Below, one piece after another: positions 3,553 through 60,370 of a stretch of DNA of 64,000 nucleotides; the first letter of the stretch is position 1; the number at the start of each line of letters is the position of its first letter. Both the position numbers and the translations under genes were made by a program. Source of the stretch: Convolutriloba macropyga (taxonomy: Eukaryota); the NCBI RefSeq assembly GCF_964194025.1, contig NC_134473.1, forward strand, positions 27,404,001 to 27,468,000, in the 5' to 3' direction. The notes beneath the pieces are model-generated. The model was not told the origin of the DNA, ran no database searches, and was given only the letters and a program-made list of their open reading frames with translations.

Positions 3553-5071
3553 GCTTATTTAGACCCCAATTTTGCTGTTCAAAACTCAAAGAGAGAATTC
3601 AATTAAAATTTATAGTAATATTGCAATTTTCGTGCAGCGAATCAATCCAACAATTGAATTATCGTTCTACCCAAATATTTTTTTCTGAGTTCCTTGATAT
3701 TATTGTAGCAGCGAATGGATCGCTGAGGTTGTCAGCTGTCTCTGTTGTGTCACTCTCATTGTCACTCTTTATGGTTTTTAGTAAATGAGCAATTTATAAA
3801 AATTCTTTATTGACTCAATTATAGACCTTAAAAAAGTCCTCTTTGCCGAAGTTGTATTTTTTGACTGTTTCCTGTTTTCAATTATCCGCTTTAATTATCT
3901 TTGAAAACTGTATGCTTTGTCTCATGAAAAAAAATTGGGCTTTCAAAAAAATTTTCCAAGAAACCTGCCTTAAGGCTTCCAAGAATTTTGTTGTTGATTG
4001 CTCATTTTATACCATTTTGTAAGGTTGAACTCTTCGAGACAAGTGTGAAAAGTGAGCGAGAAACTGATTAAGTTCAAAGTCTAGTGTGATATGAAACATC
4101 AAATCTTGAAAAAAAAGTGGGACGCTTGAAAAAGTATGAAATAATGACTCCTTGCTTGATCAACTTTCAAAATTAGTCGAGCCTAACTTTATTGTTGATT
4201 TTCTTTAACAGCGAAATTGAGGTCTAATTGTTTTTTGTTAACGTACCTTTAAATGGTCTTATGAACAGTTTTTGGCAGTTATTTGAGGGATTTTCGTCTT
4301 TCCTTGGCTGGTGTCTGACTTCGGAAACTTTTTGATTTGTTTGATTGATTTTATAATTTTTGGAACACTATTATGATTAAAATGCATAGATTGCAAGTGT
4401 ATGTAGTGCTTTAAATCAACTGTTGCTTAGTGTATGTCGTTATTTTAGGTCTATACTTCTTTAGTTTGCGGTTCATGGACATTGTTTCGTGTCGTGGGTT
4501 TTTATTTAAACTTTTTTTTGCCTAATTTGTTTCCTTGTAATGGCTCGCAAATACAGTAAAGCGTCAAAGGAAAAGTGTGATGAAGGTTTCATTACACAGT
4601 TTAAATTAGCTACGCTGTATGTTCTGTAGTGAACGTATCCAAGTGAGGTTGGAATCTCTTCGCCAATTTAATGAGACATAGCTGGGGCCTCTGAGGCCCC
4701 TGTCATTTTAATACCGCGTGGTTATACTTGTTTTTGTTCTAGTATCTGGCTGTAGCACAAAATATTACCGTGCGTGGCAAAATGTGAGAGCTCCCTATTT
4801 TTTATCAGGGTGTCTGTATACACTAATTGTTAGTTAGGAATGTCAAAGACCTACATTTTGTGTGAACAAAATGTGAGGCCGGATTTTATGATTTGCGATG
4901 GAGAGCATTGAAGCATTCATGGTGTGTTTGGACCGTTTCGTTCGATTTAGTTCCTCATGTTACCAAGTTAACTTGTTGTGACAATAGTAACAAGTAAAAA
5001 CTATTAAGTTCTAATTGAATGGTTCTATTTTCAGCATTGAATTTGTTTGAATCATTCCTCCGTTTTGCATC

Positions 5072-5131
5072 ATGACGCTAAGTTACAACTACCACAGACA
5101 GCAACATATCCTCAACTTCAATCATTCTTGA
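5072..5131 (+). promoter_or_regulatory. Upstream ORF (19 aa) in the XPO7 5' leader
   Basis: ATG 5072 to TGA 5129-5131, between the acceptor AG at 5033-34 and the main ATG at 5194. Confidence 0.4.
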
Positions 5132-5193
5132 AGCCATTAGTACTAATTGAAGACACATTGAAGCATCTGAAAAAGGAGCACAGATTGGTAATC

Positions 5194-6452
5194 ATGAACG
5201 CAAATTCAACCAATCAGATTTCGATGATCGAAAGCTGTTGCATGGCGTTGTATGAGTCGCATACGGAACCGGAGCGACGTAAAGCCGAGGAAACGTTGAA
5301 AGAGTTCTTCGAGAATGACCAACAGAACTCAGTTTCGCGATGCCACATGGTTATGGAGAACTCTGCCTCACCTTATGCCCAATTGTTGAGTGCCAATGCT
5401 CTCGCGAAATTCGTCAGTAAACCATCCAGTCAAATGAGTTTGGATGAGAAGATTTGGCTGAGAAATTTTGTTCTTGCAAATACATATACAAGATCTAAGA
5501 TGCCTGTGTATGTCACGCAAGCTTACACGCAACTTTTTGCTAAGATTACAAAGTTTAATTGGAACGAAGAGCAAAATAACAAATTTGTGTTCCGGAATGT
5601 TCTTGAAGATGTTAAAAAGTTTCTAAGTGGAGACTTGACACATTGTATACTAGGAATTGAAATTTTGAATTCTTTGGTTGACGAAATGAATCATTATGAG
5701 CCTTCAAGACGACTTAACGAGCATCGCAAAATTACAAATTCATTTCGTGATTCGTGTTTGATGGATGTTTTTACGCTGTCACGAGATCTATTACGTGACG
5801 CTTTAGATAATGGAATTGACCCTTCGGATTTACAGCAATGCCAATTAATGGAAAAATTAGTAAAATTAAGCCATAGTTGTCTTTCCTTTGATTTCACTGG
5901 AAATTATCTAGATGACGCTACAGATGAAATGTGTACAGTACAAATTCCTGGCTCTTGGCGAGACTTATTTGTCAACTTCAAAACTATGAATCTATTTTTT
6001 GAACTCTATCAACGTTTGCCATCAAATAACTGCTCCACTGTTGTATCTTGTTTATCTCAAATGGCGGCTATAAGAAGATCTTTATTCACTAACACGGAAC
6101 GGACAGATTATTTCCACAATTTACTAGCCGGTGTGAAAACAATGCTTGAAAATATTGATCACTTGTCCGACTCAAAGACGTATCACGAGTTCTGCAAATT
6201 GTTGGCTCGTTTGAGGGCCATCTACCAGTTAACAGAGTTTGTGAAAGCTCCCTGTTGGGCTGACTTTGTCAGACTTTTAGCCCAGTTTACTGTCAATAGT
6301 CTTCGGTTTGTCGAGTGTCCGGCCAACAGTTTGCACTATGTTCTCAGTACGTGGCACAAGCTGGTGGCTTCGGTGCCCTACATGCGTTCCAATGAACCCC
6401 ACTTTTTGGAAAAGTATGCGCCTGAGGTGACCATTGCCTACATTACCACTCG
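5194..6452 (+). CDS. XPO7: Exportin-7 (RanBP16) exon 1
   Basis: MNANSTNQISMIESCCMALYES...HRKITNSFRD...TVQIPGSWR...AAIRRSLF...YHEFCKLLARL match the XPO7 family; in-frame stop at 5038 upstream; donor CG|GTTAGT, phase 2. Confidence 0.95.
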
Positions 6453-6525
6453 GTTAGTTTCTTAAACAGAATTCTTAGCACTGTTGAGTCGTATACGGAA
6501 TTAATATTTGTCGTATCGACTTCTC

Positions 6526-6688
6526 GGATCTATTCTGTTTTGCCCCCCCAGTGTTTTTTTACGCCCACAGTTACAAATTATATGTTGTTATATAGCACAT
6601 TACTATGTAAGAAAATAGCATGTGCTCCTGGGGGCGTAAAAATATAAGCCCACTAAGTGGGGGGTGGGGGGCAAAACAGAATAAATTC
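6526..6688. mobile_element. MITE (GGATC...GATCC-type TIRs, 8-bp TSD GACTTCTC); right end duplicated at 6697-6754
   Basis: TIRs GGATCTATTCTGTTTTGCCCCCC and GGGGGGCAAAACAGAATAAATYC; GACTTCTC at 6518, 6689 and 6747. Confidence 0.8.
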
Positions 6689-7224
6689 GACTTCTCGGCG
6701 TAAAATTATAAGCTCCCTAAGATGGGGGGCAAAACAGAATAAATCCGACTTCTCGATTGAGATGAGGCAGACATTAGTTTCAGTAGAGCTTAAAAATTTC
6801 AGGAGCAAAAAGTTTTATTACGAAACTTTCAAGATTTCTGATTTCTTAGAACAATTGGCAGAGCGGGAATTAAAGCTTTCAGTTTATGATTGACAAGTGG
6901 GATTTTTATATTCTCTAAGGAAATAACTCAATCAGAGAAAAAGTGGTTACTCAAATTGTTAAGAAAGATCGTCCTTCTCCAGAGCTTTCTCCACTATCAG
7001 CACGTACTACAATGATCATTTGCAAAAAAGTGCCGAAGCAAGGTAAAAACAAGAGCAGTTTTAAGTGTTCGGTGATCCTTTAACAATTGTTGTTGAGGGT
7101 TGATAGCACAAAAAGAAACTTAGGAGTCAAATTTAAAGAGGTTTTGAACAGGATTGCTGAAGTTAATTTCATTGATACGTATTGTTTGCCCGAAAAATGA
7201 GATTGAGAATGTAAACTAGAGAAA

Positions 7225-7340
7225 GTTTGTTTGTTTGTTTGCGTTGCTTTGCTTTGTTTGTATGTTGGTTTGTTTTTGTTTGTTTGTTTCCTTTTTTGTT
7301 TGTTTCTTTGTTTCTTTGCTTTGTTTGCTGTTTGGGTTTA
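7225..7340. repeat. Degenerate (GTTT)n microsatellite
   Basis: Directly visible. Confidence 0.85.
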
Positions 7341-7344
7341 TTTA

Positions 7345-8685
7345 TAGGTTACTGCATGGTTTCTGGTGTCAATGAAATAGGTTTCAACATTTTTGCAATT
7401 TTAAGTTTTTCTAAATTTATTGTCTTTTCACTTTTTTCGCCTCAGCGGCCGCGCAAGTTGCTTTAGGGTTTGATAGTATGTTACTGCATCATTTCTAGAG
7501 GCAGTGGTTTGGTTTTTAAATTTTAGCACGAAGTTTTGAAATATTTTAATAAAGTTTGATTTTTCAAATTTTCTGAACTTTATAATCATATTCTAAATTT
7601 GTCAATCTTTATGAGCCACTGAAGCTATTTAAGGCTTGAAGTAGGGATACTGGGTAGTCTCTGGAGACAATGAAATGGTTCTGAAGATATTAATATCTTG
7701 AGTTTTGTTAAAATTTTGATTTGTCCATAAATTTTTCAAAAGTTTTTGTCATTTTCTGAGTTTAGCGATCTTTGCTGGGCGAATCGTTTTTATGTCTTGC
7801 AGATGGGCAACTTGACAGAACGGCAAGAACAGAAAAATGGTTTTGAACATTTTTGTTCTGCGAAAATTAGAAATTTTCTTTAAATTTTGCACTTCTCAGT
7901 TTTTTTGAAGCATGTGTCATAGTTGTCGAGTTTTTCTACCTTAAGTGGCAAATAGATCTATTTCAACGCTTGTGCTTGAGTAAATGAGTTTTTGCATTGT
8001 ATCATATTTGTTTTTCAGGTTAGAAGCTTCGAGAGTTTTAGCAATCATTTTTTGTTTAAGTTTGTTCGAATATTTTAGTTTCACAACTACTATTTTGTCT
8101 TTTTTGCTGGGATTGTTTAATTGTTCGTTTTGTCTGGTACATTAGTTCTGTTTTTCATTCAGTTTTTGGAGTGTATTCCAGGACTTTTCCTGCTATGTTT
8201 TTTTTTTTCAAATGGTCCCCATCGATTATTCTTGCTACCGCTGACTTCTTCAATTTCCGTGACTTCTACTGCTTTGCAGTTAAAATTTATGTGCGTGACA
8301 TCATCTACTTTTAGGTTAATTGCGTGACTGACTTCACTAAAAAAATGACTGAACTCACTAAATGAACTTTAATTTTTTTGAAGTTTTTACTAGTCAAAGA
8401 TCAATAGTGTGCATCTAAGTAGTGCCAAACGTATATGCACTAATTCTTGAGTATTAGATTCTTGAGTTTTTGATTTAGAATATTACTTTTGAAAAAGCTC
8501 TTAGGGTTTTTTCCCTATAGAGCGTATGTGTCTCATAAAAATGACAGTCCAAATCTAATCAAAAAGTCATGTGGTCTATTAAAAGACTGGTGGTCAATCT
8601 GTATATTATTTCTTTAGCTGTTTCAATTCCATGGAAGGCCACAAGCGTCTATCGCGGCTGTTTTGCGGCAATTGGCGGCTATATT
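7345..8685 (+). mobile_element. Non-autonomous Helentron-like (HINE) copy; 5' boundary approximate
   Basis: Shares internal modules with 12690-13700; ends GGAAGGCCACAAGCGTCTATCGCGGCTGTTTTGCGGCAATTGGCGGCTATATT. Confidence 0.65.
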
Positions 8686-9156
8686 CAACAGTTTTAATTC
8701 TGTTTGTTTTTCATGCTGAATTGTTTCCTTTATGCACGTTTAGTCTGTTGACGAGTTTGAGATGAAAATGTTTCGATTTCGTTCTCGCAGGCGTTTCCCG
8801 GAACAAATTTTGACCCCGAACAAATTTAATAGGGGAAAGACATGAATAGAGAAGACTCATTACAAAACGGTTTTTCACGGGATGTTGTCTCGAAGTCTCA
8901 ATTTATTTTCAACTCAGCAGTCAGTAACAACTGAAAATGTTGTGCTCTCAAGCAGAAATTGATTCTAGTCAGTATTCATGACGATTAAAAGTTGACTAAA
9001 AAATTTTTTCATCATTTCAAAAAAAAGTAGAGCATGTAAAATATTGTATTTTATTCACATGGTTGGTGGGAAAGTTTGGATTATCATAAATTTTTCCTGC
9101 ATACTCGTGGACACCTAATAGAAGCAGGTTTTGAATTAATTGTTGTGATTGCGTAG

Positions 9157-9277
9157 GTTGGAGCAAGTGCCTTTGCTTATGCGTGATGAGACGTTGAGCA
9201 ATGCCTTGAGTGACCAAACCATTTTGCAGCAACAGTTGGAGCAGGTGGCGATCGTAGCAAGGTGCACATACAAAAAG
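9157..9277 (+). CDS. XPO7: Exportin-7 exon 2 (missed by the ORF track)
   Basis: tag|G TTG GAG gives RLEQVPLLMRDETLSNALSDQTILQQQLEQVAIVARCTYKK|gtactt; phases 2 and 0 fit the neighbouring exons. Confidence 0.93.
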
Positions 9278-9486
9278 GTACTTATCACCTCATCCTCTTA
9301 TCATCACTCTCAGTGTTAGTTGCAATTACTGATGTCAGTATTTTATAGTCATGTTATATATTGTTCTATATCATAATCATCAATCATGCGTCTAAATCAA
9401 TGTTGAAATTTTACGCGACCGACAGTTTTTGTCATCTGAATATGGATTGTTGCTGTTACTGAGAAATTTTCTATGTTGCTCTTTAG

Positions 9487-10358
9487 GTGGCTGAAATGAT
9501 TATACATCTTTACGAGCAAGCTAGCAGTGAATACCAACAAGCAGCTGATATGAACGCGTTGAGGGTCAACCAGTACAAATTATGTTGGCTCGTATACATC
9601 ATAGGAGCTGTGGTTGGAGCGAGAATGACTGCTAGTTGCCAGGAAGATAATGAATCACACGACGCGCAACTAATCTGCAGAGTTCTTTTGCTTGTCCGCC
9701 ACTTAGAAGCACAACCGGTCGAAAAAACGTTGGACCACCTTGAAATTGCAATCATCTCCTTTTTTGACCAGTTTAGACGCATCTACATTGGCGAGCAAAT
9801 GCAAAAGATGTCCTACGTTTACATAACACTTTCGGAAGTAATGGGATTGAAAGATGAAACGATGATTTTAGAGTTGATTGTGAACAAAATCCTGAACAAC
9901 CTGAAACTCTGGTCCTCGAACAGTATTATTCTATCACAGACGCTGCAGCTTTTGAGTGACCTTTCATTAACCTACAGTGGGTTGAGAAAACTAGCCAAGC
10001 TGGAACCGGTACAGACTTTACTTAGAAATCACTCTGGCGAGGTTCTGCCGTTTTTGAGCCTAGACAATCACGGAATATCTGAAGATGATTTACGACACCG
10101 AACCACATTTTATACTTCGTTAACAAGGTTACTTCTCGTTGACCTTTGTGACGATGATGACAGATTTGAGGAGTTTTTGCAACCTCTGACAGTAGCGCTG
10201 GATTCTTTGGCGCAACATTTCATGAATGGTGCTGTTATAATGAACTCGGAAATTTCGAGGCGAGTCTTCATTGGGGTGTGTCGAGATCTGCGTGGAATCG
10301 TTCTCGCACTCAACACCAAGAATTACTTCCTGATGTTTTTCGAGTGGTTTTATCCAAG
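9487..10358 (+). CDS. XPO7: Exportin-7 exon 3
   Basis: tttag|GTG; WLVYIIGAVVGAR, FFDQFRRIYIGEQ, RTTFYTSLTRLL, IGVCRDLRGI; donor AG|GTTAGC. Confidence 0.95.
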
Positions 10359-10521
10359 GTTAGCGCTCGAAGCTGATATCTGCTCTGAGACTATGCTCGT
10401 GCAATTCTTGAGACTTTTTACAGCGCTTCTTTTGAAGTTTGGAGCGCTCGAACTTCCACTTTGCACCTACAATTGTATTAATTGCATTTTTAGATGTTTT
10501 TTGAGTTGATTCTGTCTCTAG

Positions 10522-10671
10522 GTACTGCCCTATGTTCCACAAGGCAATAGAGGTGTGGTTCACAGATGCCAAAGTGATGAGTCCTGTGCTGAAGCTGTAC
10601 TGCGAGCTGATGCAGAACAGGTTCCAACGTCTCCTATTTGAGACATCTCCTCTCGGCATCCTTCTGTTCAG
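10522..10671 (+). CDS. XPO7: Exportin-7 exon 4
   Basis: ctag|G TAC gives YCPMFHKAIEVWFTDAKVMSPVLKLYCELMQNRFQRLLFETSPLGILLFR|gtgaga. Confidence 0.93.
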
Positions 10672-10999
10672 GTGAGAGAGATGACATTAAACGTGCAACA
10701 TTCTATTGTATGAACTCTAGCGTCAAAAGGAGTGCCAGATATGTTGCTGTTATTTGTTTGACGGAAAAGAATTATTTGGTTTGAGAATTACATTGGAACT
10801 GGCTCTGAATATAGGAATTCGGCATTATATTGTTATTACTTTGTCTCTGATGATCATGTAGCTTTTTGGACTCCATCAACTGGAAAGGCTTTGTTCAAAG
10901 TTATGATATAATTGAGAACTCGCATCTGTTTAGTAATAAATTTTGGAATGATTTAGAATGTTCTGAGATAAAACAAAAAGTTAAAACTTGCTGTTTCAG

Positions 11000-11130
11000 A
11001 GAGTGCAGTTCTCTGTTGGTGAAGTATGGAGAGCGAATGCTGTCGACTGAGGTGCCCAAAGAGAAAGAGTATCCATTGAGACTGAAGGGGATCTGCACCT
11101 CTTTCCACATACTAAAAAACGCACTCTCTG
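11000..11130 (+). CDS. XPO7: Exportin-7 exon 5
   Basis: tttcag|A GAG gives ECSSLLVKYGERMLSTEVPKEKEYPLRLKGICTSFHILKNALS G|gtgagt. Confidence 0.93.
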
Positions 11131-12132
11131 GTGAGTCAACGCTGCTACAAAAGATCCGGCCTATATGTAGCAAATGAGCTCGGAGCTCAATAAGCTTGTG
11201 CAGATTTGTTTAGTGGGAGACTTCATAGTCTGCTTCATAATTGTTTAAATTAGCCAGCATTAGCAAACACCAAGTGCTGTTGGTATTTGGTGCTATTTTA
11301 ATACGGCTTACTAGACTCTAACTGTGATTCACCGAAATTGTTTAAAAGAGATAATTCATGGGGAGAAGGGCGGTTCTGAGGACTTTTACCCCCTCCCACT
11401 TAAAACCCCCCTCAATCAACCAAACCCAATGCTCATCCCGCCACCTCAGTTAAGCTAAGACGTTATTATCTTCCAGTGGGTTGCAAGTACTTAAAACGAA
11501 CTAACTGCTCAAAACGAACTTTTTCCTTTACGGATGAATTTGCTTACATCTGCTGAATTTCTTGCAGTGAGTTCTTACTTTTTTAAAATCTACTTTGTTA
11601 TTCATCTGTGAACTTCGCTTTTGTGATGGTCTAGTCGTATGCACGTTCCAATAGTAAATGACTTCCACCCTAAAATTCTGGGCTTGATTGATTTAAAAAG
11701 TATTTGAAAGAATTTCAAAAAGAAGATGAAAAGAATCGAAAGCTAACGTTAACGTGGGCACTGTTGCTAGAGTGACTTGTGAGATTTCCGTTTGTGCTCA
11801 CATCTTAATGGATGCTTACATATGGCAACACACAGGTGCTCTTGCATTATTGTTATAGAATTATTTATTAGCCGCAAAAGGGTAGCTGGGGCTCTTTTTG
11901 ATCATCTTTCTTTTTACAGTCCAAAGCGTTTTGATTTTATCGGTGTGGTGTCTTTTTTACGACTCGAAGGTGAGGATTGGGATTCTACAGGTTTCAAGTT
12001 TGTTCATGTTGAATCTTGACTTCTTTCTATTCGAACATTTACTTCCGTTTTGAAGGTTGACTTTTGTTTTTGATCATTTGACTTTCACAGTAGATTGGTT
12101 TGTTATATATAGTAATAAACTGCTGGTATTAT

Positions 12133-14116
12133 TAATAGCCGCACAGCGATAGCTGGGGCTATTATTGGCCTTCTCTTGGTTTTTAATAGCGGCACAGCGA
12201 TAGCTGGCCTTCTCTTGGCTTTTTACAATTCAAAGAGTTTGGATTGTATTGAGGCGCTGTTTTTTCTTAAGATGTGTTCGCACATTTTTCAATGACTTTG
12301 ATCTATCAAAACGCGATAAACAGGTAAAGCCCAGCGGGAGTTAAGTTTCATTAGAGGCGCAAAGTGGGCATCAGTAGTCCTTGAAATGCTTAGAGTGGTG
12401 CAGCTGCTGGGATAGCCTTAATTTAAGGTTAAAAGGCCAATTTTAGGAGTTTTGGTCTCAAAATGGTGCAATTTTTCATGTTTTTTGTGATTTTGAGTTT
12501 TTTTTACTTGATTAGTCTTAGGTTGAAGTTTTTGAAAGTTGACGAAGGCCTTTTGCGAGACAAATTTACTTGTTGTGACCATTTTATGAGCTATCTGTTT
12601 TTGTACTACAAATAAAAACACGCAAAATGATACTATTTTTTGCTCTTTTTTTCAAGTTTTTTGAAAATTGTCATTTTTTGATGTTTTTCAGCTTCAGGAG
12701 CCGGGAAATCTCCTTTGAGTTTTGATAATAGAGCACTGCATAGTTTCTAGTAATAATATGTTGGTTTTAGCATTTAAATGTCTCGAATTTCTGCATTTTT
12801 TGATAAATTTTTTTAAGGTTTCCTAAAGTTTTGGTCAATTTTTGATATTTGTCCAATCTCAAGTGCCAGAAAACATATTTCACGGTCTGATAAAAAGTTA
12901 CTGCATAGTTTTTAATTTCAATGGATTTGTTTTCAACAATTTAACTTTTCGATTATTGGAAATTTTTTTATAAAATTTGCAATTTTTTTTTCAATTTTTC
13001 AATTTGTCTTTCAATTTTTCAAAACATTTGTCTTTTATTCAGTTTTTCTTGCCTCAGTAACCAGGTAATCTTGTCCAGGGTTTGATAATATGTTATTAAA
13101 TATTGCTAGGGGTCAATTGAACGGGTTTCAACATTTTAATAGATTGAATTCCTATTTGAAATTTGAGATTTTTTTCTAAAAATTATTGCCTATTGATCTT
13201 TGGGCCCATAAAGGCTTGGAATTGGGTTAATGAATAGCCTGTAGATACACAGAAATGATTCTGAAGTTATTAATATCACGATTTTTGGCAACATTTCATT
13301 AAAATTCGCAATTGGTTTTAAAAATTTTTGGTCACTTTTGAAGTAATCGATCTTCAAGGGCCAATGAATTTTTTCCAGTTCATGCAGATTTAATTCTGGC
13401 CCGATTTCAGAAACGAAAATTGGTTTTAAACATGTTTTTGAAATAGGAATTTATAAAGAGATGAAATTTTGCCTAAGGGATAAAAGCTTCAAGAGTTTCA
13501 GCAATGAGTATATTTTTGTTTAGTTTGTTTGATTGTTTAGTTTCTCAATTTTTTGAGATGAATTTGTTTGTGTTTTGGCTGGCATTGTTCAATTGATCTG
13601 CTGGTCAGATTAAGTACTTCTTAAGTTTTTCATTCAATTCTTCGAATTGTATTTCAGAACTTGTCCTACTATGTTTTTTATTTCGTCGTCGCGATTTTTG
13701 TTACGACCATATGACGTCGCAAACACTTAAATCTGTTTTTTGTTCATTCGTTCATGCAATTTTAACTGACTTCATTTTTCGCTCTTAGTACAGCGAGTTT
13801 TTTGTTCTTTCGTGTGACTAAATTTTCAGTCACACTTGACTTACCTCACTCACAAAAATGACTTCCTCTCTTTGAAATTGACTTTTCTTTACTTTAATTC
13901 AAAGAGATAAAGTCAAATAGGTATGGTCACTAAATGTAGGTTATTAGAGAGCGGCTAATAGAGGCAGCAAAAACTTATACAGATTTTTAATCAAAATGTA
14001 ATGTATCTGCCTTCAATGAAAAGACGAATTTTTTTGGTTGGTCTTTTTAACTCTTTTTTAGACTGCAGATCTACGAAGCTATTGCGGCTATTTTCTGGCA
14101 ATCTGCCAGCTATGTT
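12133..14116 (+). mobile_element. HINE/Helentron-like copy (~2 kb) with duplicated 5' end, degenerate ~180-bp internal repeats and a nested family-B fragment
   Basis: 5' TAATAGCCGCACAGCGATAGCTGGGGCTATTA; 3' TGCGGCTATTTTCTGGCAATCTGCCAGCTATGTT. Confidence 0.8.
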
Positions 14117-14378
14117 ATATCTGTTTTCAAAATTTATTCATTTCTCGGTCACCTGCAAACCACTCAATCCACTCAACCGGATTCTGCTGTCTAGACGTAG
14201 GTTCACGGTTAAAAGCGCTTCATGTTAACTTATGGTCCGCCACCTTCTTTTTGACCCCCTTCTTCTCTCCTCTCACCCACGCTAGTCTGCTTAAGCTTAA
14301 GGTAGCTACAAAAAGCAATCCCACCCCAGTTGTTTGAAGCAGTTCGTCAGACGCTAGTCGGTTATGTCTTTATCCTAT

Positions 14379-45546: not shown

Positions 45547-45577
45547 TCGTTTTATTAAGGAGTTTTTTTTCTTTTTC

Positions 45578-46320: not shown

Positions 46321-46366
46321 CACTGTATAAAAGCATTAAACGTGCGTGTTTTAGTTTCAGACGTAA

Positions 46367-48087: not shown

Positions 48088-48099
48088 AAGATATTTTAG

Positions 48100-49800
48100 A
48101 CTACCTATTTTGTATTCCGATCTAAGTACCTGTGTTAATTTTTAACCAATTTAAAAATGCGCAAATCTTTGATCGAAGGGAACTTTTACTTTTCTCGTTT
48201 TTGCAATGTTCATTCCGTTTTCTTTTAGTGAAGTTGATTCTAGCTATTTGTTTTCTTTCTAACGGGTGAAGTGTTTTCTTGCTACTAGTTTCATATACTA
48301 AAACGCCAAAGCTTAGTTGGGTTTTTGTAAACTTAAAGTTATAATAAGGTTATAAGCTGTGCAGTTGTTAAAATTCGTTTCAACTTCTAAATCAAACCTG
48401 AACCTTTACAGTTTCTACCATATTTTTGAAATATGCCGATTAAAATTAGTTATTCATCAATTCGTATTCCAGTGTACGGTAGGGACGTTTTCTGACTGAT
48501 CGCTCCGTTTTTCATTTTTAACTCTGATCGAAATTTTTCCATTTGCTTTCAATTTCTTTAGGTGCTTTATTTGTAAATTGGTGGCCAGTTATTTTTGCAA
48601 GAGTTAGTCGACAACAGATTCTAGTGGCCTGGTAAATTGTTTTGGCGTGAATACACATTTTGCTTGTTAAGGTCGTCATCAGCGAACAATGCAGCTCTTG
48701 AGTAACTGCAAAAGTCCAGAATATCGTTTATATAAGCTAGAAAGTGAAGGGGTCCTAGCAGAAAGTGAAGTGGTCTTAGCCTGCGGCACTCCATATCCTA
48801 TTAGTTAGAGTTCCTACCTGACTTCTACTGATCTCACATTTTATTGTCTGTCTTTCAAATAGTATTTCGGTAAACTTTGTTCAGGTCCTCTTATACCTAA
48901 GTTTTCTAGCTTTTCGAGAGCAAATTTCGTTCAATTTTGTCAAATGCTTTATTCAGATTTATGAAGACAGCTCTTTTGTTGAATCCAATTTCCCAGTTTT
49001 TTTCTGATAGCATCGACAAACTTTACCAATTCTTCAGTTGTCCCTTTCTTGGGTCGAAAACCAAATTTATTTTTATTGAGCAAATGAAATTTATTGAGGA
49101 ATGTGTGGTCATTCGTTTACAGACGACCCTCTCTATGGTTTCGACAATCGTTGGTAATAAACTGATTGGCCTGTACTTCTCTGCTTTGTCAGCATTTCCG
49201 CCCCTTTGTTTTGAAATACAACTGATGTTTGAAACATTTTGCGAAATTTGCAAGAGTGTTTTGTCAGTACTCATTTTGGAAATTTTGTCCTTAACACCTG
49301 ACCCATTTTTCGTTTTTGGTCAAAGTTTCAAATGCATTGCGGGAAAATCTGAAAACCGTGCAAAAATAGTTAAGGTGGAAAATGAAGAATTTGTTTGGTT
49401 GAGATATGTTTTTGGTGAATTTAAGTTTTTGAGTGATACCTTACTAATGTTATTGGGTCTTTAAATTTTGTCGCTGTTTGAAATTTTTCCCTTGTGAAAT
49501 CTGTTTTTTGGCGTTTTATGACGATTTTTTTTTAAAGTCTTTCTCATCGGTTTGCTCGGTTTATTAGAATAAGCTTATTCACTTATTTTGGCGTAGTTTT
49601 GTCTTGTCGATAATTCTATTTTTAGGAGCTATTTGCTTCAGAATTATTGAGAATTCTTCTGACCCGAGAATTATCGATCGGAGGAAAATATGGGATGTAT
49701 CATTTGATGGATCTGACAGCATAGAATGCTTCCGCAAGAAGGATTTCTGAAAGTGCATTTTTTGGGACAACTAGGTTAGGCAAAACGATATTCTCATGAT
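48100..49800 (-). mobile_element. Decayed non-LTR retrotransposon RT region (CR1/L2-like); ends approximate
   Basis: Minus-strand motifs YRPISLLP, VFINLNKAFD, GIRG, GVPQ, LGPLHFLAYINDI, LFADD; stops and frameshifts. Confidence 0.85.
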
Positions 49801-50560
49801 TTCAACAGAAAAAGATTTAGTTTCCAAAATAATTGGCTGCGTTATGATAATAATAATAACAGCTTCCCATTTACTAGATTAGATTAGATATTTATGAAAC
49901 CTGGTCGACTGGTAAAACACGAGGCAAGTAAGGTACTTGCAACTACATCTACACCTTTTTTTCCCGATGAAATTGAAGGCCTTTGCAATTCGACTGGATT
50001 TCAAATGTGGTTGTAACCTAGGTAGAATTTTACAAGATCAGAAAAATTTTTAAGATTTCAAATTTCGTCTCCTTAATGGTAATTCTAGATGTTCAAAGAG
50101 CGCATGTTTTATAATTCTTTACAGTGGCTAATAATGAGGGGTTTCAAACTACAGCTACGGAACTTAACGACTTTGAAACAACTTACTTTTTACAAAAGTT
50201 TTGCGAACTTTCAAGTTTTACCCTGCTTTCTGCTGTATTTGTTTTCTTTTCATAAGTTAATTGATGCTTCGAAAGCCATATAGTAAGAATATCAAACGGT
50301 TTGTTTTTTATGATTGTTATGAAGTTGCCGTTGGTAGATGTCAGTTTTGATTACTTGGCAACTGCTTATTTTCGATAAAATAATTGAACTTCTTAATTTA
50401 AACACATGGTCACTTATTGAGGGTTTTTCAATACCTTGTCATTTCATGGTTAAATGGATAGAGATATAGTTCACTTGCACGTTTTGTTTTGGCTGGTAAA
50501 ATCAAGGTTTGAGGTGTTCGAAGAATTGATTGAAAATTTATTGAATCATCATCTCTTCAG

Positions 50561-51023
50561 GCGTTCATCAGTCTCCAAAAGGTCTTCCAAGACTGAGAGC
50601 AGAACAACTAGTCCTAAAATTTCAGCGTCAGAAAAGCTGAAACAAGATGTCATTTCGATTTTGAAGAAGAAGGAACCAAAAGAAGACTCTGATGTGGAAG
50701 AGGTCAAGCCATCTGTTGCTGCGCTCGATAACATCAACTCGGATACGTTTAAACAGCGTCAGTTTAAGTCAACAGCTAACAAGCAGAGCAAAAGCTACAA
50801 TAGTACGTCCAACATTGCCTCCAGAGGGCTATCGGCTCTTAATCCAACTTTGGCTGCTTTAAACTCGAATAGATACCGTAAACAGAAGGATCTCCAGGAA
50901 TTGTCAATTTTCAATGATAAATTTTTTATGGATGAAGATGAGAAGATAGCGAATTGGATGAAAAAATTGACAGAGTACAGAAGTGCATTTGTGAAGCTGA
51001 GAAAGCCGGTTGTTGATGCATGA
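50561..51023 (+). CDS. RSRC1: RSRC1-like exon 2 (terminal); spliced protein 236 aa
   Basis: ctcttcag|G CGT fits phase 2; INSDTFKQRQFKS and SIFNDKFFMDEDEKIANWMKKL resemble the RSRC1 C-terminal motifs as recalled. Confidence 0.78.
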
Positions 51024-51559: not shown

Positions 51560-54518
51560 TTTTATAACTCTTAGTACCGGGCGACATCTAGAATTACTAC
51601 TGCATAATCGAAAATAATGGGCCCAAAGAAAGAGGCAAAGGATGAAGAGGGTAGAACTCACCGCAGTTGGTAATAAAATCAAACTAATGAACACCTACAT
51701 ACCACCTTCGTCTAGCTGTTATGCAGGATACAAAACATCTGTCAGTAAACTACTAGAGTTAGATGACTCTATTATTGTCGGTGATTTCCGTGCTCATAAC
51801 CCTTTATGGCACTCGAAACTAACTGGAATACACAAGAGAAAACTATATTGTAAGTGAAGTAGACCTCTCTATCATGTAGTACTCAACGATAAGGACAGCA
51901 CAAGAGTAACTAATTCTTGTTAAAGCTCCCCGGACATCAGTCTCGCCAGCTCTACAACAGCAATGAACGTCGATTGGCGCACGGAGTAAGCATTAGGCTC
52001 GGACCATTTACCAATAAATCTATCCATCACCTGTGACTTCATCACACACAACACCACAGATTTCAACTTCCGCAAAGCTGACTGGTCATGTTTTCAAGAC
52101 GACATTGAACTAAAACTGATGAAACAACAGAGGCCAACAAATGTCTACCATGTGGAAAAAATGAAGGAAAGTAATCGATGCAGCGGCTGGCAGGCATATG
52201 CCACAAGGAAGAATTAAAACAACGGTTGCCAATTTTCCCAGCAAAGTATTAAAGATTTCTGAAAAGAGTTTCAAGTCAAAGAAAACATCCAGGGGACCCA
52301 AAGATAACACAACTAAAGCTTGAAATAAACAAACTTCTTCGAAGTCAAAAGCGCAAAAAATGGATCGAGTTTTTACAAACACTTGCAGAGGTAACTGCTA
52401 TAATTTTGGGAGCACAGTAAAAGTTCTTTTGTCAAGTAACTCAACCGCCTACAAAAAGAGCCACATACTGTAACGTTAAGACGACTAAACCTCACCATGA
52501 CCCAAGGAAATGCGCAAACAAGTTAAACCAACAATACACTCCACACACCAAGAAAAATGAAAAACAGAAATAGACTATGAATAATAAGGAAACTGGAGAT
52601 AGAGGGCAGAACGTGTAAAGGTAACACAGTGCACAGTGAAAGAAGCTAGCAGACACCAAGAAAAGTAAGGCAAGCCCCAGATATAATAGCGCCAATCCAC
52701 CTACACCATCGAGGTCCCATGGCACTCAGATACCTCACTGACACCATAAACTTTTCTGTAAGTAGTGCATAGTCCCGTACATCTGGAAAGTTGGCAGGGT
52801 TGCACCCCTACTTACGCCGTGAAAACCATAGAGGAATCTAAAAGGTTCAGATAAATTGCACTCCTCTCCCCCTTGCGGAACTAACAGACAAACTTTTACT
52901 GCTAAAAGACTTTATAAGACTATCCACCAAAAGAATATCAGCGCGGCTTTCGACGTGATTACTCCACAACGATAGCTCTCCAAATTGTCACCAACGATAA
53001 ACAAAGGCTTTTATCTAAAACTTTGCAACCGCTCTCTTCTAGTAGCCTTAGATCTCACTTCCTCTTTCAACACGGTTGATCAGCACCGACTACTAAGAGA
53101 CAGATTCGAGACACCACTACCAAATAGCACAAAAAGATGGTTAGCCTCATACTTACAGGGCAGGTGTTCTTACATAGAATATAACAAAAAATCATTATGT
53201 AAATATCAAACAGGATGTTAAAGGTGGTGTATTATCGCCCAAACTCTTCAACATCTACACGAGCAAGCTGCTTCCCCCAAAAGGAAAAATATCACGTCTT
53301 ACATTGATATAATTTTACTAAATCTCATCCACTGGTTGAAAAATTATGTGCGATGATAACTTGCTACCTATTTATTTTGCCTGACTGGCTAGATTCAAAG
53401 AAAACGCAAGCTATCAGCTGAGAAATCCAGTGCAACTTTGTTCACAACCTGAAGCAAGGAGGCCAAGCTTGATCCACACCTCGCTATCAACAGTACACCA
53501 ATACGAGTAAAGTACTTGGTGTCATCTTCTTTGGTATGCTCAATTTTGAAGAACACGTAAGGAGCACTAAAGAGAAACTACAAAAGCGCAATAACATATT
53601 GAAAAGGATTGCTGGTAGCGACTGGGGCTGCACAAAAGAGACACTCATTGACCTGCAAAGCTATCGACTGGAGCGTTCTGAACTACAGTGCTCCCATTTG
53701 GAACCACCTGCAAACACAAGAAAACGTTGCTTTCGACACAATTACTGGCTCTGTAAAAATTTCTGACCTGAATGACTTACACAATGAGGGTGAAATGCTG
53801 CCTGTTAAAGCCCTCACCGAAATGTTAGCAGAGCAATTGTGAGCCGGCAGTTATCATTGCCACGTGCTGATCATAAAACATTCTCCTCAACCAGTTTTTG
53901 TCCCACGAGACCGACCCTAAACAATACTTAGAGGGACCACGTGAAACAACACACAAACTACAAAGAGCATTTAAATTGCAAGGAATACAAAACTATGCTC
54001 AAAGTATCCGTCGAAACACAGTCCAGACTCAAAGACAGCAAGCCACTAGGCTCGCCTCCAACAACGATAGCAGAAGAACAAACGCTACCACTAATTGCAC
54101 GTATCCGACTAACCTAACAGGAAACTGGATATTGCCCCCTGCTAAACTCTTACTTGAATATGATCTGTTATAATGTCCGTAATCACCGTTGTCCCAATTG
54201 TGAAGTATCACCACGTGATGGAAACCACATTTTCAACTGCAGTAAGAACAGCACGGACCTGAAAGTGATTGACTTGTGGGAAAGACCAATAGAGGTAGCT
54301 AAGTGGCTGGACTAAATACCATCAGTCCAAGTCGACCACACTGCACATAACAATCTGCCTTCCTTGCCACCTTTCCTTCGCTGTTGACGATGCGCCTCGG
54401 GGACCGCCTAACGCTGGGACCGCTTGTTCACCATGGCGTAAATGCAGAAAGGTCGCCGCACCACAAACAAGTTGTAGATAGGCAGTCACACTGCTACTAA
54501 TATGTGTATTATTATTAT
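51560..54518 (+). mobile_element. Decayed LINE ORF2 (APE + RT + CCHC), I-group/Ingi-like, with GC-rich 3' region and (TAT)n tail; 5' end approximate
   Basis: NTYIPP, IVGDFRAH, SPDISL, GSDHLPI, VALDL.SSFNTVD, GGVLSPKLFNIY, KYLGV, AGSDWGCTKETL, CPNC...HIFNC, DLWERPIEVAKWL; many stops. Confidence 0.88.
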
Positions 54519-54875
54519 GATACAAATGCAACTGAGGTACAAGTTAGAAATGGCTATAAGTGTCGGTATCCCGCCAAAATTACCTGCGAATTGCAGCTCT
54601 GTGTGACAGCTATAACCACGACAACATTTAGAAATACTGAACATAAGCTGATTTTATTGCTGATATTGCTAGGCAAACAACAAGTGTATACAAGCATGAA
54701 TAAATATTTTCTTTTGAACGACTCAAACGCATAAGGCTATCAATTTTTCTACATTTCAGTATTTCGATAATTGGTTGCAATATCTTTGAGGCTAGGGATA
54801 ACTTTGCGAAATCACAGGCGCTCCAGCCTCCTTGTTGGGAGTAGCCAAAGAAAAACTTTTTCAGATGTTAGTAAA

Positions 54876-55042
54876 ATGAACACAAAAGGGGATGTGAGTG
54901 GAGGTGGGAATGCAATGGCGGCTGCTGCCAAACAACAACAACAAATGGAGCAGATGGAGAGAAAACAGCAACAGAAAGAAGCTTACGAAGAGGCGAGGCA
55001 AACATTGCTACACAATGCCTTAGACCAGAACGCCTTAGCCAG
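54876..55042 (+). CDS. PDCD5: Programmed cell death protein 5 exon 1
   Basis: EEARQTLLHNALDQNALA R|gtacgc, phase 2; start codon less certain than the donor. Confidence 0.85.
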
Positions 55043-55223
55043 GTACGCTCATGTCGTTCTGAAAAAGATCGGCAGAAGAGAGGGGTGTAGATCGGGTTTT
55101 ACGATTGAAAGAATATGAAGTGAATTGATGCTTCAGAAATTGAGTGAAGATTTTGCTTCGACCTGAGGACTGCAATTATATCAGTAATTAAATTTTTCAT
55201 TGTCTTTGGCGTGAGTTCGTTTA

Positions 55224-57217
55224 TTGATAGCCGCGAAAAGATAGCGGCTATTATTGGGGACATCGTGTTTTTTTTACAATTCAAAGAATTGGAATTGTAT
55301 TGGGCCGCTGTCTTTTTACGACTCGAAGAGGAGCATTGGAGAAGTCCTTTTTAATCAATTTTATTGGAGTGTATTTTGAAGCAGGAAACACGTGAAAAAA
55401 TTTGGAGTGATTTTGTTGCTGGACAAAATGAAGAGTAGAGCGAAAAGAGATTGGTTTTTTTGTTCTTATTGCTGTTTTCTAGAGAGCGATAAATTGAGGC
55501 GTGAAAAATAAATTCTGTAACCGAGCGAAATCTTTTGTTCACGTGCGGCATTTTAAAAGTTTTTTTCAATTTTTTTTTGGTTGTGATTTTGTCTTAATTT
55601 CAGGCTAGTTATGGTAGTGGCTTGAAGGTTTCTGGAAACTCATATGCATTTATTTTATACTAATTCGGAGGTTTTTCGTGTATCTTGATGAATTCTGGGC
55701 TAACTTTTGTTTCTTAGCCTTTTATCACTTGCCTATTGTTTTCCAAGCATATTTATACCCTATTGGCTGAAAGGAATTTTTCTTTGGATTTATGTGCTTT
55801 TGTAATATAAAATTTTGTTTGAAAGTTATATAAAAGTTGTTTGAAAGAGCTTATTTTTTCATGATTTGGCTTCAAGTATTTTTAAAGGAAAATTCTCATA
55901 AGTGGTTTTCGTAGGCACTAGTTGTTTTGATGGCAGAGATAGAGGGATCTCAATTTATGTCAAAAATGGATTCGATTTTTATCATATTTTAATAGATTTG
56001 ATTTTCTTGCTTATACTTTTTTGTTTTGCGGTTTTTTTTTCAAGATAATCATTAATTAAAGGAGGCACGTTTTGTCTGATGAGTATTTGGATGGCGTTTC
56101 AGTGGATTTCCACTTCGAGTCGTGTACACTCATAGTCACTTCTAGGTTTATTTTTTAAGTAGTCAATGAGAATTCCTTGAACTGTACGCCAGGACTGTTC
56201 CTGCTAAGTTTTTTAATTCGTCTCATTCAATGATTCTTGCGATTATTGAATTTTTCTATTTCACTGACTTCTATTAAAAAGTTATTATTATTATTATTAT
56301 TAATAAAAAAATTATTATTATTATTATTATCATCATCATCATTATTAGTATTATTTAAAAAAGACAAACGAACTCCTAACTAGTAAACATCCAAAAATAC
56401 CGACCGCATCAAATTGTCGCCGTAAAAAAACAAATTATCAAGTTAATTTATATCAAGCAAACTTTTATGGGATGTGCGAAACAAAAGTGTCTACCAAAAA
56501 CTACAACACTAAATTTTGCAGCTTATACAGAAAATATTCTGCCCGTCAAACCTAAAGCGATAAGAACAGGTGTAGAGGATAGATCAAATTAGGAAATCAA
56601 TAGGTTTATGGTTTTTGTTTCAAGATAATCATAAATTAGAGGAGGCACGTTTTGTCTGATGAGTAATTGGATGACGTTCAAGTGGATTTCCACTTCGAGT
56701 CGTGTACACTCATAGTTCATTCTACGTCTATTTTTTTGTGTAGTCAGTGAGTCTTCCTTGAATTGTACGCCAGGACTTTTCCTGCTAAGTTTTTTAATTC
56801 GTGGTCTCATTCGATGATTCTAGCGACTATTGAATTTTTCAATTTCACTGACTTCTACTGCTTTGCATATAAAATTTGTGTGCTTGACGTAATTTGAGCT
56901 TTAGGTCAATTGCGTGACTTACCTCACTCAAAAAATGACTTCTGAACTCAACTCACTTAATGAACTTTATATTTTGTGAACATTTTTTTAAAGATTAATA
57001 TTGTGCATAATGATTACTAGTGTGCATCTAAGTAGTGTCAAACGTATATGCCCTAATTCATGAGTATTAGAGTCTTGAGTTTTTGATTTCTAATATTAAT
57101 TTTGAAAAGCTCTATTAGGGCTTTCCTTATAGAGTATATTTTTTCTTTTGTTGTTTCATTTCGATGGAAGGCCACAGGCGTCTATCGCGGCTATTTTCCG
57201 GCAATCTCCCGGGTTTG
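55224..57217 (+). mobile_element. Composite HINE subfamily-2 element(s) with internal duplication, (TTA)n tract and an extra ~250-bp segment
   Basis: 5' GATAGCCGCGAAAAGATAGCGGCTATTATTGGGGACATC; 56040-56272 repeated at 56620-56858; 3' TCGCGGCTATTTTCCGGCAATCTCCCGG. Confidence 0.75.
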
Positions 57218-57742
57218 TTTTGCATTTATTGAAGTTTTTGTCAATTATTGTAAACATTTGTGGCTTTTCTATGCACATTTCTTGCTTGACCGTTTCGCTA
57301 GAGAATATTCCTCTGCTCGCTTTGAGTTGACTTTTCGGGTGACTTTTAAATACTCTCGAAAGAAGTTTGAAACAATTAATATAAACGTGTCTTTTCTGAT
57401 TGCACGTTATTGCAGTCCTCCCATACAACCTTCACAATCCTACCTCTTCCATCGCTTGACCCCCACTCCCCTACTCCCACTTAATGTGAGCATCCCTATG
57501 CCCCAGCTGGCTACTACCGAAGTCAACGACAAACCTCGAATTTCATGTTAAATTCCATGAGATTCGATGAATCATAGAATTGTTCAAATACTACTTGCGT
57601 TACTTAGATAAATTCATCAAATTAGGTCAAATTTTGTATATTAGTGGAAAAGCGGCATGGGAAGTTCAATACAAACTGTTTTGAGGTTTGAGTCGGGAGA
57701 ATGGCTTTCAAACTACCGACGAACAGCTGACTTTGGGTCTTC

Positions 57743-58905
57743 AATGTCTTTCCCCTATTAAATCTGTTCGGGGTCAAAATTTGTTCCGGGAAACGCGTGC
57801 GTGAACAAAATCGAAACATTTTTATCTCAAACTCGTCAAGGGACTAAACGTGCATAAAGGAAAGGATTCAACAGGAAAAACAAACAGAACTAAAACTGTT
57901 GAACATAGCCGCAAATTGCCGCAAAACAGCCGCGATAGACGCTTGTGGCCTTCCATGGAATTGAAACAACTAAAGAAATAATATACAGATTGACCACCAG
58001 TCTTTTAATAGATCACTGGACTTTTTGGATTAGATTAGGAATGTCATTGTTATGAGGCACATACGCTCTGTAAGGAGGAAACCCTAATAGAGCTTTTCAA
58101 AATTAATAATAGAAAATAAAAACTCATGAGTATTACAGTCTTAATACTCATGAGTTAGGGCATATATAACGTATATGCCCTAACTCATGAGTATTACAGT
58201 CTTAATACTCATGAGTTAGGGCATATACGTTTGACACTACTTAGATGCACACTAATAATCTTTATGCACACTATTAGTCTTTAACCAGAAATTGTTCACA
58301 AAATATAAATTTCATTAAGTGAGTTGAGTTCAGACGTCATTTTTTGAGTGAGGTAAGTCACGCAATTGACCTAAAGCTCAAATTACGTCAAGCACACAAA
58401 TTTTAACTGCAAAGCAGTAGAAGTCAGTGAAATTGAAAAATTCAATAGTCGCAAGAATCATCGAATGAGACGACGAATTAAAAAACTTAGCAGGAAAAGT
58501 CCTGGCGTACAATTCAAGGAATACTCATTGACTACACACAAAATAGACCTAGAATGGACTACGAGTGTACAAGACTCGAAGTGGAAATCCACTTGAACGT
58601 CATCCAATTACTCATCAGACAAAACGTGCCTCCTCTAATTTATGATTATCTTGAAACAAAAACCATAAACCTATTGATTTCCTAATTTGATCTATCCTCT
58701 ACACCTGTTCTTATCGTTTTAGGTTTGACGGGTAGAATATTTTCTGTATAAGCTGCAAAATTTAGTCTTGTAGTTTTTGGTAGACACTTTTTTTTCGCAC
58801 ATCCCATAAAAGTTTGCTTGATATAAATTTACTTGATAATTTGTTTTTTTACGGCGACAATTTGATGCGGTCGGTATTTTTGGATGTTTAATAGTTAGGA
58901 GTTCG
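57743..58905 (-). mobile_element. Inverted HINE subfamily-2 copy plus ~160 bp of 3' flank shared with 8686-8846
   Basis: 57902-58905 is the reverse complement of ~56369-57210; 57743-57901 is the reverse complement of 8686-8846. Confidence 0.85.
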
Positions 58906-59052
58906 NNNNNNNNNNNNNNNNNNNNNNNNNNNNNNNNNNNNNNNNNNNNNNNNNNNNNNNNNNNNNNNNNNNNNNNNNNNNNNNNNNNNNNNNNNNNNNN
59001 NNNNNNNNNNNNNNNNNNNNNNNNNNNNNNNNNNNNNNNNNNNNNNNNNNNN
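58906..59052. other. Assembly gap
   Basis: Run of N. Confidence 1.
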
Positions 59053-59065
59053 AAAAGGGGATGCA

Positions 59066-59492
59066 GATAATTCCCGGAAGGCATTAAGTTGCTGACTAGC
59101 TCTCTTAGAGTTGTACTAGTCTTCAAAAGTACAATGCGCCAAAGCTGCTCAGAAGACATAAATTATAAAAAATCATGGTGCAAAGGGCCATTTGCACCCC
59201 CTCACTCCATCCGCAAACCCCTCCCCTATTGTAACCCCTGCCTAATGCTAGCCTCCCTGAGCACAAGCTGGCTACTAATCACTTGCGGGTCGTTTGAGAG
59301 GAATTCGCTCGATGGTTGTCGGCTATGTTTCGGAAATTTGGCCCCTCATCTTGTTCCAACCAACCCTCCATTGCCCCCTCAACCCTTTCATCAAACCAGT
59401 GAGGCTAACTTCCTTAAGTTTGACCTACCTATTACCGAAGGCAAATGATCGTACTTCGTTAGAGAGCAATTTGTCCGCTATTAGTCGGTTAT
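59066..59492 (+). mobile_element. Repeat family B copy with internally duplicated 3' part
   Basis: GGCATTAAG...ACTAGTCTTCAAAAGTA; CGTTWGAGAG.AATT...GTCGGYTAT at ~59291-59325 and ~59457-59492. Confidence 0.6.
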
Positions 59493-59512
59493 CTTTTATC
59501 TTTTTTAATTTT

Positions 59513-59679
59513 GGATCGTTTCCGTTTGTGCCCCCCCCCCCCCGTACGTTATGCGCCCCCAGTTACAGAGCACGTGCCATTGTATAGTAAATTATCATGT
59601 AAAGATATGGCACGTGCGTCTGGGGGGTGCAAATAATATGAGCCCACTAAGCTTGGGGGGGCACAAACGGAAAAGATCC
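59513..59679. mobile_element. MITE of the GGATC...GATCC family within the PDCD5 acceptor region
   Basis: TIRs GGATCGTTTCCGTTTGTGCCCCCC and GGGGGGCACAAACGGAAAAGATCC; flanks TTAATTTT and TAAATTTT (7/8 match). Confidence 0.85.
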
Positions 59680-59690
59680 TAAATTTTTAG

Positions 59691-59898
59691 ATATAACAGT
59701 ATCCTCATGACGAAACCCGAGTATGCTCAAAAACTGGAACCGTTCATCATTCGGGCGGGACAGTCCGGTCAACAGATTAGCGATGCACAATTTAAACAAC
59801 TCCTAGAACAGTTCAGTCAGCAAGCTAAGCCCAAAAGTTCCAAAGTTAATTTCCAAAGGAGGCGAGTAGATTCAGATGACGACGATGATGATTTTTGA
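59691..59898 (+). CDS. PDCD5: PDCD5 exon 2 (terminal); spliced protein 124 aa
   Basis: ttttag|A TAT gives YNSILMTKPEYAQKLE...SGQQISDAQFKQLLEQ...KVNFQRRRVDSDDDDDDF*, the typical PDCD5 C-terminus. Confidence 0.9.
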
Positions 59899-60370
59899 TT
59901 TTAATTGACCTATTTCTGCCACTTCTTTTGAAATCGTATCTGCGTTCAATGGGTTATGATGTGATATAATGTGCAAGTGTGATTTAAAAATTGATCGGTA
60001 AAAATTGCCGTCTTTGTTCATTGTTCGGCTTGAAGCACGGTCTGAGTAAAGCTAGACGTTTAAAGTTTTGAATTATTTCATGTACGTTGCTAGACATCTT
60101 AGCAGCTAAAATCAGAGCTCGCAAAATGTACTAAAGAGTTTAGAATCGTTTAATATTAAAGGATATGACCGACAAATCCAAAGTTTGTACTTTATTCATG
60201 TGTGTAAGTAGTACCTCTGAGTTTCAATTTCAGATAATTTGATCAGCTCTGAACGCTGAAATGAGCTTTGTTTGTTGAAAGCATTTGAGGTGCTACGTGT
60301 TCAACCGATTTGTACTAAGTCTGTGTCAAATTTGCTCCGTGCAAACTTAACCAACTGAAATCTCATCGTA

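Follow-up and report, generated by a model that had tools for sequence, protein, structure and literature searches.

Candidate spliced-leader acceptors before four co-oriented genes of the acoel Convolutriloba macropyga, and the question of an operon

The operons of Caenorhabditis elegans are polycistronic units resolved by the SL2 spliced leader (SL). Among acoels, SL trans-splicing has been described in Symsagittifera roscoffensis, for which a 32-nt leader has been published and 30% of the genes are reported to be trans-spliced, in a paper that describes no operons (PMC9911081). Operons of the chaetognath Paraspadella gotoi have been called at less than 250 bp between genes (PMC12460157). 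The DNA considered here, referred to as the window, is a stretch of 64,000 nucleotides from the acoel Convolutriloba macropyga (assembly GCF_964194025.1, contig NC_134473.1, positions 27,404,001 to 27,468,000 of the forward strand, with positions below counted from its first letter), and it carries four co-oriented genes: XPO7, a gene for an arginine/serine (RS)-rich protein, PDCD5, and an FKBP8-like gene. A first-pass annotation of this stretch had proposed that the four form a trans-spliced, operon-like cluster, and its statement that all of them lie on the + strand with an acceptor motif before each ATG has held up. The acceptors near the four ATGs are probably sites at which a shared leader is added, and the explanation that accounts best for the observations as a whole, which we rate slightly above an even chance, is that they represent SL acceptors at separate transcription units and that no four-gene operon exists.

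C. macropyga has a canonical SL RNA gene family whose leader is the one published for acoels. The first 31 nt of the S. roscoffensis leader are found unchanged in the C. macropyga genome, directly followed by GT, in at least 1,271 copies, so that the genome search for an SL RNA gene that the first-pass annotation had recommended was successful. Most of these copies stand in tandem arrays on contig C9, between 23.1 and 23.7 Mb, and in the array copies that were read the donor continues as GTAAGT. A donor layout consisting of leader, A, and then GT was rejected, as the leader ends at AG and GT comes directly after it. The SL unit is predicted to fold into a stem that pairs the 3′ half of the leader, a single-stranded U-rich Sm-like site (AGUUUUAUUUGAA), and a terminal hairpin, with a folding energy of −36 kcal/mol (z = −4.9). 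The SL RNA genes alternate with 5S ribosomal RNA (rRNA) genes (see the example in Table 1), and this interleaving is the classic linkage. The nematode SL1 sequence was not found in the C. macropyga genome. A tandem pair of leaders, 45 nt apart, lies on the minus strand at C2:14281265-14281334 (L030/L031); each is followed by GTCAAAT instead of GTAAGT, and the pair may represent variant or decayed SL genes.

In addition, the genome contains over 2,600 other copies of the leader with up to three mismatches. Those that were read are fused directly to diverse sequences, mostly the 5′ ends of long interspersed nuclear elements (LINEs), and in the LINE-fused copies ORF1-like open reading frames (ORFs) start 2–17 nt after the leader. 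The fusion of one leader to such diverse sequences implies that, in C. macropyga, the leader is spliced onto RNAs that are later reverse-transcribed. Across 34 distinct fusions, the distance from the leader to the first ATG has a median of 14.5 nt, which matches the distances of 6 and 11 nt at the acceptors of the RS-rich gene and PDCD5. One leader fusion could not be traced to a parent gene; the copy proved to be chimeric, including sequence from a repeat family that numbers at least 40 copies. In a related assembly, a LINE carries a one-base variant of the leader (L047:5268-7268). At three unrelated loci (Table 1), an identical 19-nt stretch, GATGAGCCAGCGAGGCATG, stands straight after the leader and an A, beyond which the sequences diverge fully; this stretch could represent a second mini-exon common to all three, or the 5′ terminus conserved within a repeat family.

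Consensus 3′ splice acceptors are present in the window at 5034, 46360, 54759 or 54864, and 60233. Reading of the sequence confirmed the positions that the first-pass annotation had given for these motifs, for the branch-point-like CTAAT, and for the ATTAAA hexamer behind PDCD5, as well as its figure of 335 nt for the spacer between the PDCD5 stop and the FKBP8-like acceptor (Table 1). The XPO7 motif, TATTTTCAG, is the strongest pyrimidine-rich AG within positions 4800–5193. TTTCAG occurs 43 times on the + strand of the window (0.67 per kb), and the looser form TTTYAG occurs at 1.7 per kb; the chance expectation was expressed as the probability of encountering TTTCAG, or TTTYAG, as near to the ATG as observed. 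This probability is 0.005 (TTTCAG) or 0.012 (TTTYAG) for the RS-rich gene, and 0.008 or 0.020 for the PDCD5 acceptor at 54864. The acceptors of these two genes are individually non-random by position, and the other two are within chance.

The acceptor of PDCD5 has counterparts in other genomes. Four PDCD5 orthologues, whose upstream DNA cannot be aligned, carry a pyrimidine tract and AG shortly 5′ of the ATG: CATTTTCAG 6 nt upstream in L043, TTCCAG 6 nt upstream in L044, TCTTCTAG 10 nt upstream in L046, and TTTTTTAAG 14 nt upstream in L059. For XPO7, a close relative that is 81% identical in exon 1 has T11CAG 127 nt upstream of the ATG, which is comparable to the 159 nt in the window, within sequence that is likewise not alignable. 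The FKBP8-like region could be compared between two haplotype contigs from one sample, which differ by 15 bases and three indels across 331 aligned bases of the spacer and by none across positions 60234–60370 (18/331 versus 0/137; Fisher P = 0.0026). As the haplotype differences stop exactly at the acceptor, an exon-like boundary coincides with the AG at 60233, and the segment that follows is a putative 5′ untranslated region (UTR). The same comparison at the 5′ regions of PDCD5 and XPO7 gave uniform divergence at one and zero divergence at the other.

The observations comprise the motifs and gene models, the SL machinery, and the patterns seen among relatives and between haplotypes; from these we infer that the leader is joined at these four sites, with a confidence that differs among them. 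Addition of the leader to PDCD5 at the AG at 54864 appears quite likely, and its addition to the RS-rich gene at the AG at 46360 is, to a lesser degree, also likely. The XPO7 acceptor at 5034 is a plausible SL addition site for which the sequence evidence is evenly poised, and the FKBP8-like acceptor at 60233 is a plausible site about which one could decide either way.

Several observations weigh against leader addition and speak for a different explanation, in which the motifs are the acceptors of ordinary cis-spliced 5′-UTR introns with non-coding first exons, or chance T-rich AG motifs, and the genes have promoters of their own. The first-pass annotation had named ordinary first exons, which is the right alternative to consider, although we regard it as unlikely. 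The nearness of the acceptor to the ATG is within chance both for the FKBP8-like gene (P = 0.086 for TTTCAG, 0.20 for TTTYAG) and for XPO7 (P = 0.098 and 0.22), and the pyrimidine tract at the PDCD5 acceptor at 54864 is short. The PDCD5 intron ends in TTTTTAG; TTTYAG, with the + strand density given above, is thus also an ordinary cis-acceptor form here, and any of these acceptors might be the partner of a non-coding exon further upstream. A conserved acceptor right before the ATG, as in PDCD5, is also typical of cis-spliced 5′-UTR introns. Ahead of the RS-rich gene stands a TATAAA at 46326; the motif would turn up by chance 25–45 nt ahead of a given point with a probability of 0.011, which puts it on a par with the RS-gene acceptor itself. 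This motif is a rival signal that would fit a local promoter with a start at ~46356 and an unspliced leader of ~10 nt, and a working TATA box at this position would therefore leave no room for trans-splicing at 46360. Leader-bearing retrocopies of the four 5′ exons were not found genome-wide, only the parent loci matching, and protein look-ups returned only genome-derived contigs and RefSeq proteins, with no transcript-derived copies. In S. roscoffensis, ~70% of the genes are not trans-spliced (PMC9911081).

The explanation without a leader has to account, on the other hand, for the nearness of two sites to the ATG (6 and 11 nt, each with a P of ~0.01), for a PDCD5 acceptor that recurs in five genomes, and for the short leader-to-ATG distances in the leader fusions of this genome. 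The four co-oriented genes are housekeeping genes in an ordinary stretch of C. macropyga chromosome, and in animals that use a leader, trans-splicing is generally most frequent among conserved housekeeping genes. We consider it improbable, overall, that the four sites are served without a leader. The part of the first-pass proposal that concerned trans-splicing has gained support from the SL genes, the non-random acceptors of the RS-rich gene and PDCD5, and the recurrence of the latter; the part that joined the genes into a single polycistronic unit has not.

A four-gene operon is not supported. The first-pass annotation had suggested that all four genes belong to one polycistronic unit whose spacers were inflated by transposons and duplication, and this now appears highly improbable. 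The common + strand orientation and the acceptor before each ATG would suit such a unit, and its claim that the longer spacers are largely transposon or duplicated DNA proved correct, as they consist mostly of a LINE (degraded, at ~51.6–54.3 kb), HINE-like repeats, and a triplicated 7.6-kb segment at 19.3–43.3 kb. In a close relative, moreover, XPO7 and PDCD5 still lie next to each other in the same orientation, at a distance of 13.3 kb. Against this stand the distances themselves, which are 24.3 kb from the XPO7 stop to 46360 and 3.7–3.8 kb from the RS-gene stop to the PDCD5 acceptors; to our knowledge, no SL operon has been described with a spacing anywhere near either distance. SL operons are recognized by short intercistronic distances, with the acceptor ~100 nt past the poly(A) site or less than ~250 bp between genes, and the four-gene set lies outside this range. 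The LINE between the RS-rich gene and PDCD5 runs on the same strand as the genes. The neighbourhood varies, in addition, among relatives. The close relative has no RS-rich ORF between XPO7 and PDCD5, and the 9 kb downstream of its PDCD5 contain no FKBP8; the 10 kb upstream of PDCD5 lack the RS gene in two more distant assemblies, and in another relative USE1 takes the place of FKBP8 after PDCD5. Pfam scans of the ORFs in the orthologous spacers gave no match.

Only the PDCD5/FKBP8-like pair has an operon-like, although unproven, geometry. The distance from the PDCD5 stop to the FKBP8-like ATG is 472 nt, of which the 335 nt up to the AG at 60233 contain a single AATAAA/ATTAAA hexamer, an AGTAAA variant at 60045, and a GT-rich stretch at ~60183–60205, after the ATTAAA. 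The acceptor follows ~75 nt after the ATTAAA, and so ~55 nt past the expected cleavage site. The order of ATTAAA, GT-rich element, and acceptor would fit an SL-resolved operon of two genes, in which a promoter upstream of PDCD5 would yield a dicistronic precursor, PDCD5 would be cleaved and polyadenylated after the ATTAAA at 60155, and the leader would be spliced on at 60233. No TATA-like motif was found in the 335-nt spacer, and the exon-like constraint that starts exactly at the acceptor is consistent with such an arrangement. The acceptor position, on the other hand, is within chance, and the 335 nt from stop to acceptor exceed the 250-bp criterion used in chaetognaths (PMC12460157).

Comparison with relatives points in both directions. 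In two distant acoel-like assemblies the FKBP8-like gene likewise comes after PDCD5 in the same orientation, but the spacers there are 3.4 and 7.1 kb, and the closest relative examined, as noted above, lacks FKBP8 within 9 kb downstream of PDCD5. On a metagenome scaffold from a relative (ERZ23486757; L046:986-1170), the PDCD5 stop is followed by 119 nt, TTTTCAG, 60 nt, and the start codon of a co-oriented USE1, which suggests that PDCD5 may often head tight same-strand pairs. The PDCD5–USE1 pair is tighter than any pair in the window. Within the library covered by the literature search, no paper combines operon, spliced leader, and Xenacoelomorpha, a further point against a two-gene operon. 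It is doubtful that PDCD5 and the FKBP8-like gene are a dicistronic operon resolved by the leader, and a genuine operon of this kind, perhaps including the PDCD5/USE1 pair of the related animal, is an unlikely outcome in our judgement. If it were true, Xenacoelomorpha would have their first documented operons in the PDCD5/FKBP8-like pair and perhaps PDCD5/USE1, and the spacers of 0.3–7 kb among relatives would show how operon units assemble or decay.

The preferred explanation, SL acceptors at separate transcription units, would operate as follows. About 1,300 SL RNA genes, interleaved with the 5S rRNA genes, would supply the 31-nt leader to the 5′ ends of many mRNAs, and the four genes would be transcribed as separate units and not as a four-gene operon. 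The kilobases of non-coding, duplicated, or transposon DNA before XPO7, the RS-rich gene, and PDCD5 would be discarded as outron. Because the FKBP8-like gene lies so near the PDCD5 poly(A) signal, its pre-mRNA would either begin inside the 335-nt spacer or continue the PDCD5 transcript.

The features of the window are collected in Table 1. Of the gene names in the first-pass annotation, XPO7 and PDCD5 are confirmed and FKBP8 is accepted as FKBP8-like, whereas RSRC1 is not confirmed: the RS-rich gene has no Pfam match, and its only lead is a weak atlas match (0.75) to RSRP1. The identity of XPO7 is confirmed at the sequence level by the RefSeq mapping, a Pfam TPR_XPO7 match, and an alignment to Patella exportin-7 that begins at residue 8 with 44% identity. 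PDCD5 is confirmed through the match of its protein to PF01984 (exons searched separately), and its exon junction is in frame, exactly as in intronless orthologues. The FKBP8-like identity is accepted on the precomputed Pfam annotation (FKBP_C and TPR_1) of XP_075248801.1, the coding sequence of which begins at 60371; the ORF at 60371–62587 is identical to XP_075248801.1 and XP_075248800.1, both of which map at 100%, and the next matched coding segment lies at ~62864–62938 (a tblastn range with a two-residue overlap with the first). The LINE fragments were recognized by Pfam matches to Exo_endo_phos_2 (1.6e-5) and RVT_1 (1.1e-3), each below the curated cut-off. An Rfam search of the window gave no match.

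The extra copies of the last two XPO7 exons sit in the triplicated 7.6-kb segment, which a self-comparison of the window places at 19277–43268. On the second haplotype contig, the distance between XPO7 and PDCD5 is ~7.2 kb less (42.6 versus 49.8 kb), which suggests that the copy number of this cassette differs between haplotypes. Both assembly gaps leave the reading frames untouched. The gap at 45731–45865, which has HINE-like repeat units on either side, may hide a promoter or an exon. In the PDCD5 intron, a ~700-bp inverted repeat (96%) has its arms at 56369–57069 and 58203–58905, the second of which abuts the other gap. The length of this intron varies from 4.65 kb in C. macropyga to ~0.8 kb in the close relative (L059:10160-10980) and ~70 nt in the metagenome relative (L046:713-781); it stands at the identical codon position in these three and is absent from two more distant assemblies (L043 and L044).

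Table 1. Coordinates of the genes, candidate acceptors, and other features in the window, and of related loci elsewhere (L-prefixed entries).
Feature	Position	Strand	Remarks
Branch-point-like CTAAT	5011-5015	+	~20 nt upstream of the XPO7 acceptor; read directly
XPO7 acceptor, TATTTTCAG	5026-5034	+	159 nt upstream of ATG 5194; candidate spliced-leader or cis acceptor
XPO7 (exportin-7) coding span	5194-22018	+	RefSeq XP_075248799.1 maps at 100% identity; stop 22016-22018
XPO7 exons (seven)	5194-6456, 9161-9280, 9487-10359, 10520-10672, 10995-11132, 19734-19970, 21509-22015	+	
XPO7 last two exons, two extra copies	28486-28722 with 29196-29702; 36076-36312 with 36784-37290 (span 28486-37290)	+	tblastn, 97-98% identity
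Assembly gap	45731-45865		Lies 495 nt ahead of the RS-gene acceptor, in intergenic DNA rich in repeats
TATAAA	46326-46331	+	Begins 34 nt upstream of the AG of the RS-gene acceptor, 41 nt upstream of the ATG
RS-rich gene acceptor, TTTTAGTTTCAG	46349-46360	+	6 nt upstream of ATG 46367
RS-rich protein gene	46367-51023	+	First coding exon within ORF 46367-46615, from the ATG; last coding ORF stop 51021-51023
Degraded LINE	~51642-54300	+	Between the RS-rich gene and PDCD5; endonuclease and reverse-transcriptase fragments
PDCD5 distal alternative acceptor, ACATTTCAG	54751-54759	+	116 nt upstream of the ATG; kept in the second haplotype
PDCD5 proximal acceptor, CTTTTTCAG	54856-54864	+	11 nt upstream of ATG 54876
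PDCD5	54876-59898	+	Exon 1 54876-55041, intron 55042-59690, exon 2 59691-59895, stop 59896-59898
Assembly gap	58906-59052		Inside the single PDCD5 intron
ATTAAA	60155-60160	+	Sole AATAAA/ATTAAA hexamer in the PDCD5-FKBP8-like spacer; kept in the second haplotype
FKBP8-like acceptor, CAATTTCAG	60225-60233	+	137 nt upstream of ATG 60371
Putative FKBP8-like 5′ UTR	60234-60370	+	5-codon upstream ORF at 60261
FKBP8-like gene	60371-62938, continues beyond the window	+	First coding exon 60371-62569, 733 codons, acidic and serine-rich
SL RNA gene, example	L038:1493-1605		5S rRNA genes at L038:1025-1143 and 2658-2776, on the minus strand
Loci sharing GATGAGCCAGCGAGGCATG	L001:1533-1551; L003:1533-1551; L004	L004 minus	

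SL trans-splicing in acoels has already been published for a sister genus, and the acceptors described here are a further example of a known process; with the same published leader, they add examples and not a new principle. Their value is for annotation, in that acceptors of this kind, and not imagined upstream exons, are where gene models of this genome should start, and the PDCD5/FKBP8-like pair provides a small concrete test case for whether xenacoelomorphs have operons.

The closest known system is that of S. roscoffensis, also a convolutid acoel, with which C. macropyga shares an identical leader (the first 31 nt, then GT) and acceptors of the TTTYAG form shortly before the ATG; it is, however, another species, and the C. 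macropyga acceptors are candidates recognized in genomic sequence. The resemblance to C. elegans operons lies in the PDCD5/FKBP8-like pair, where, on one strand, an acceptor of the trans-splice type comes no more than ~100 nt after a poly(A) signal. In contrast to the ~100 nt of the nematode, three of the four C. macropyga genes are 3.7–24 kb apart, and one leader sequence was searched for and found, an operon-specific second leader not having been sought. The tightest pair of the window is more widely spaced than chaetognath operons: its stop is separated from the acceptor by 335 nt and from the next ATG by 472 nt, versus less than 250 bp between genes. What the locus has in common with tunicates and chaetognaths is a single class of leader, which would serve monocistronic and any operonic genes alike, and a predominance of housekeeping genes.

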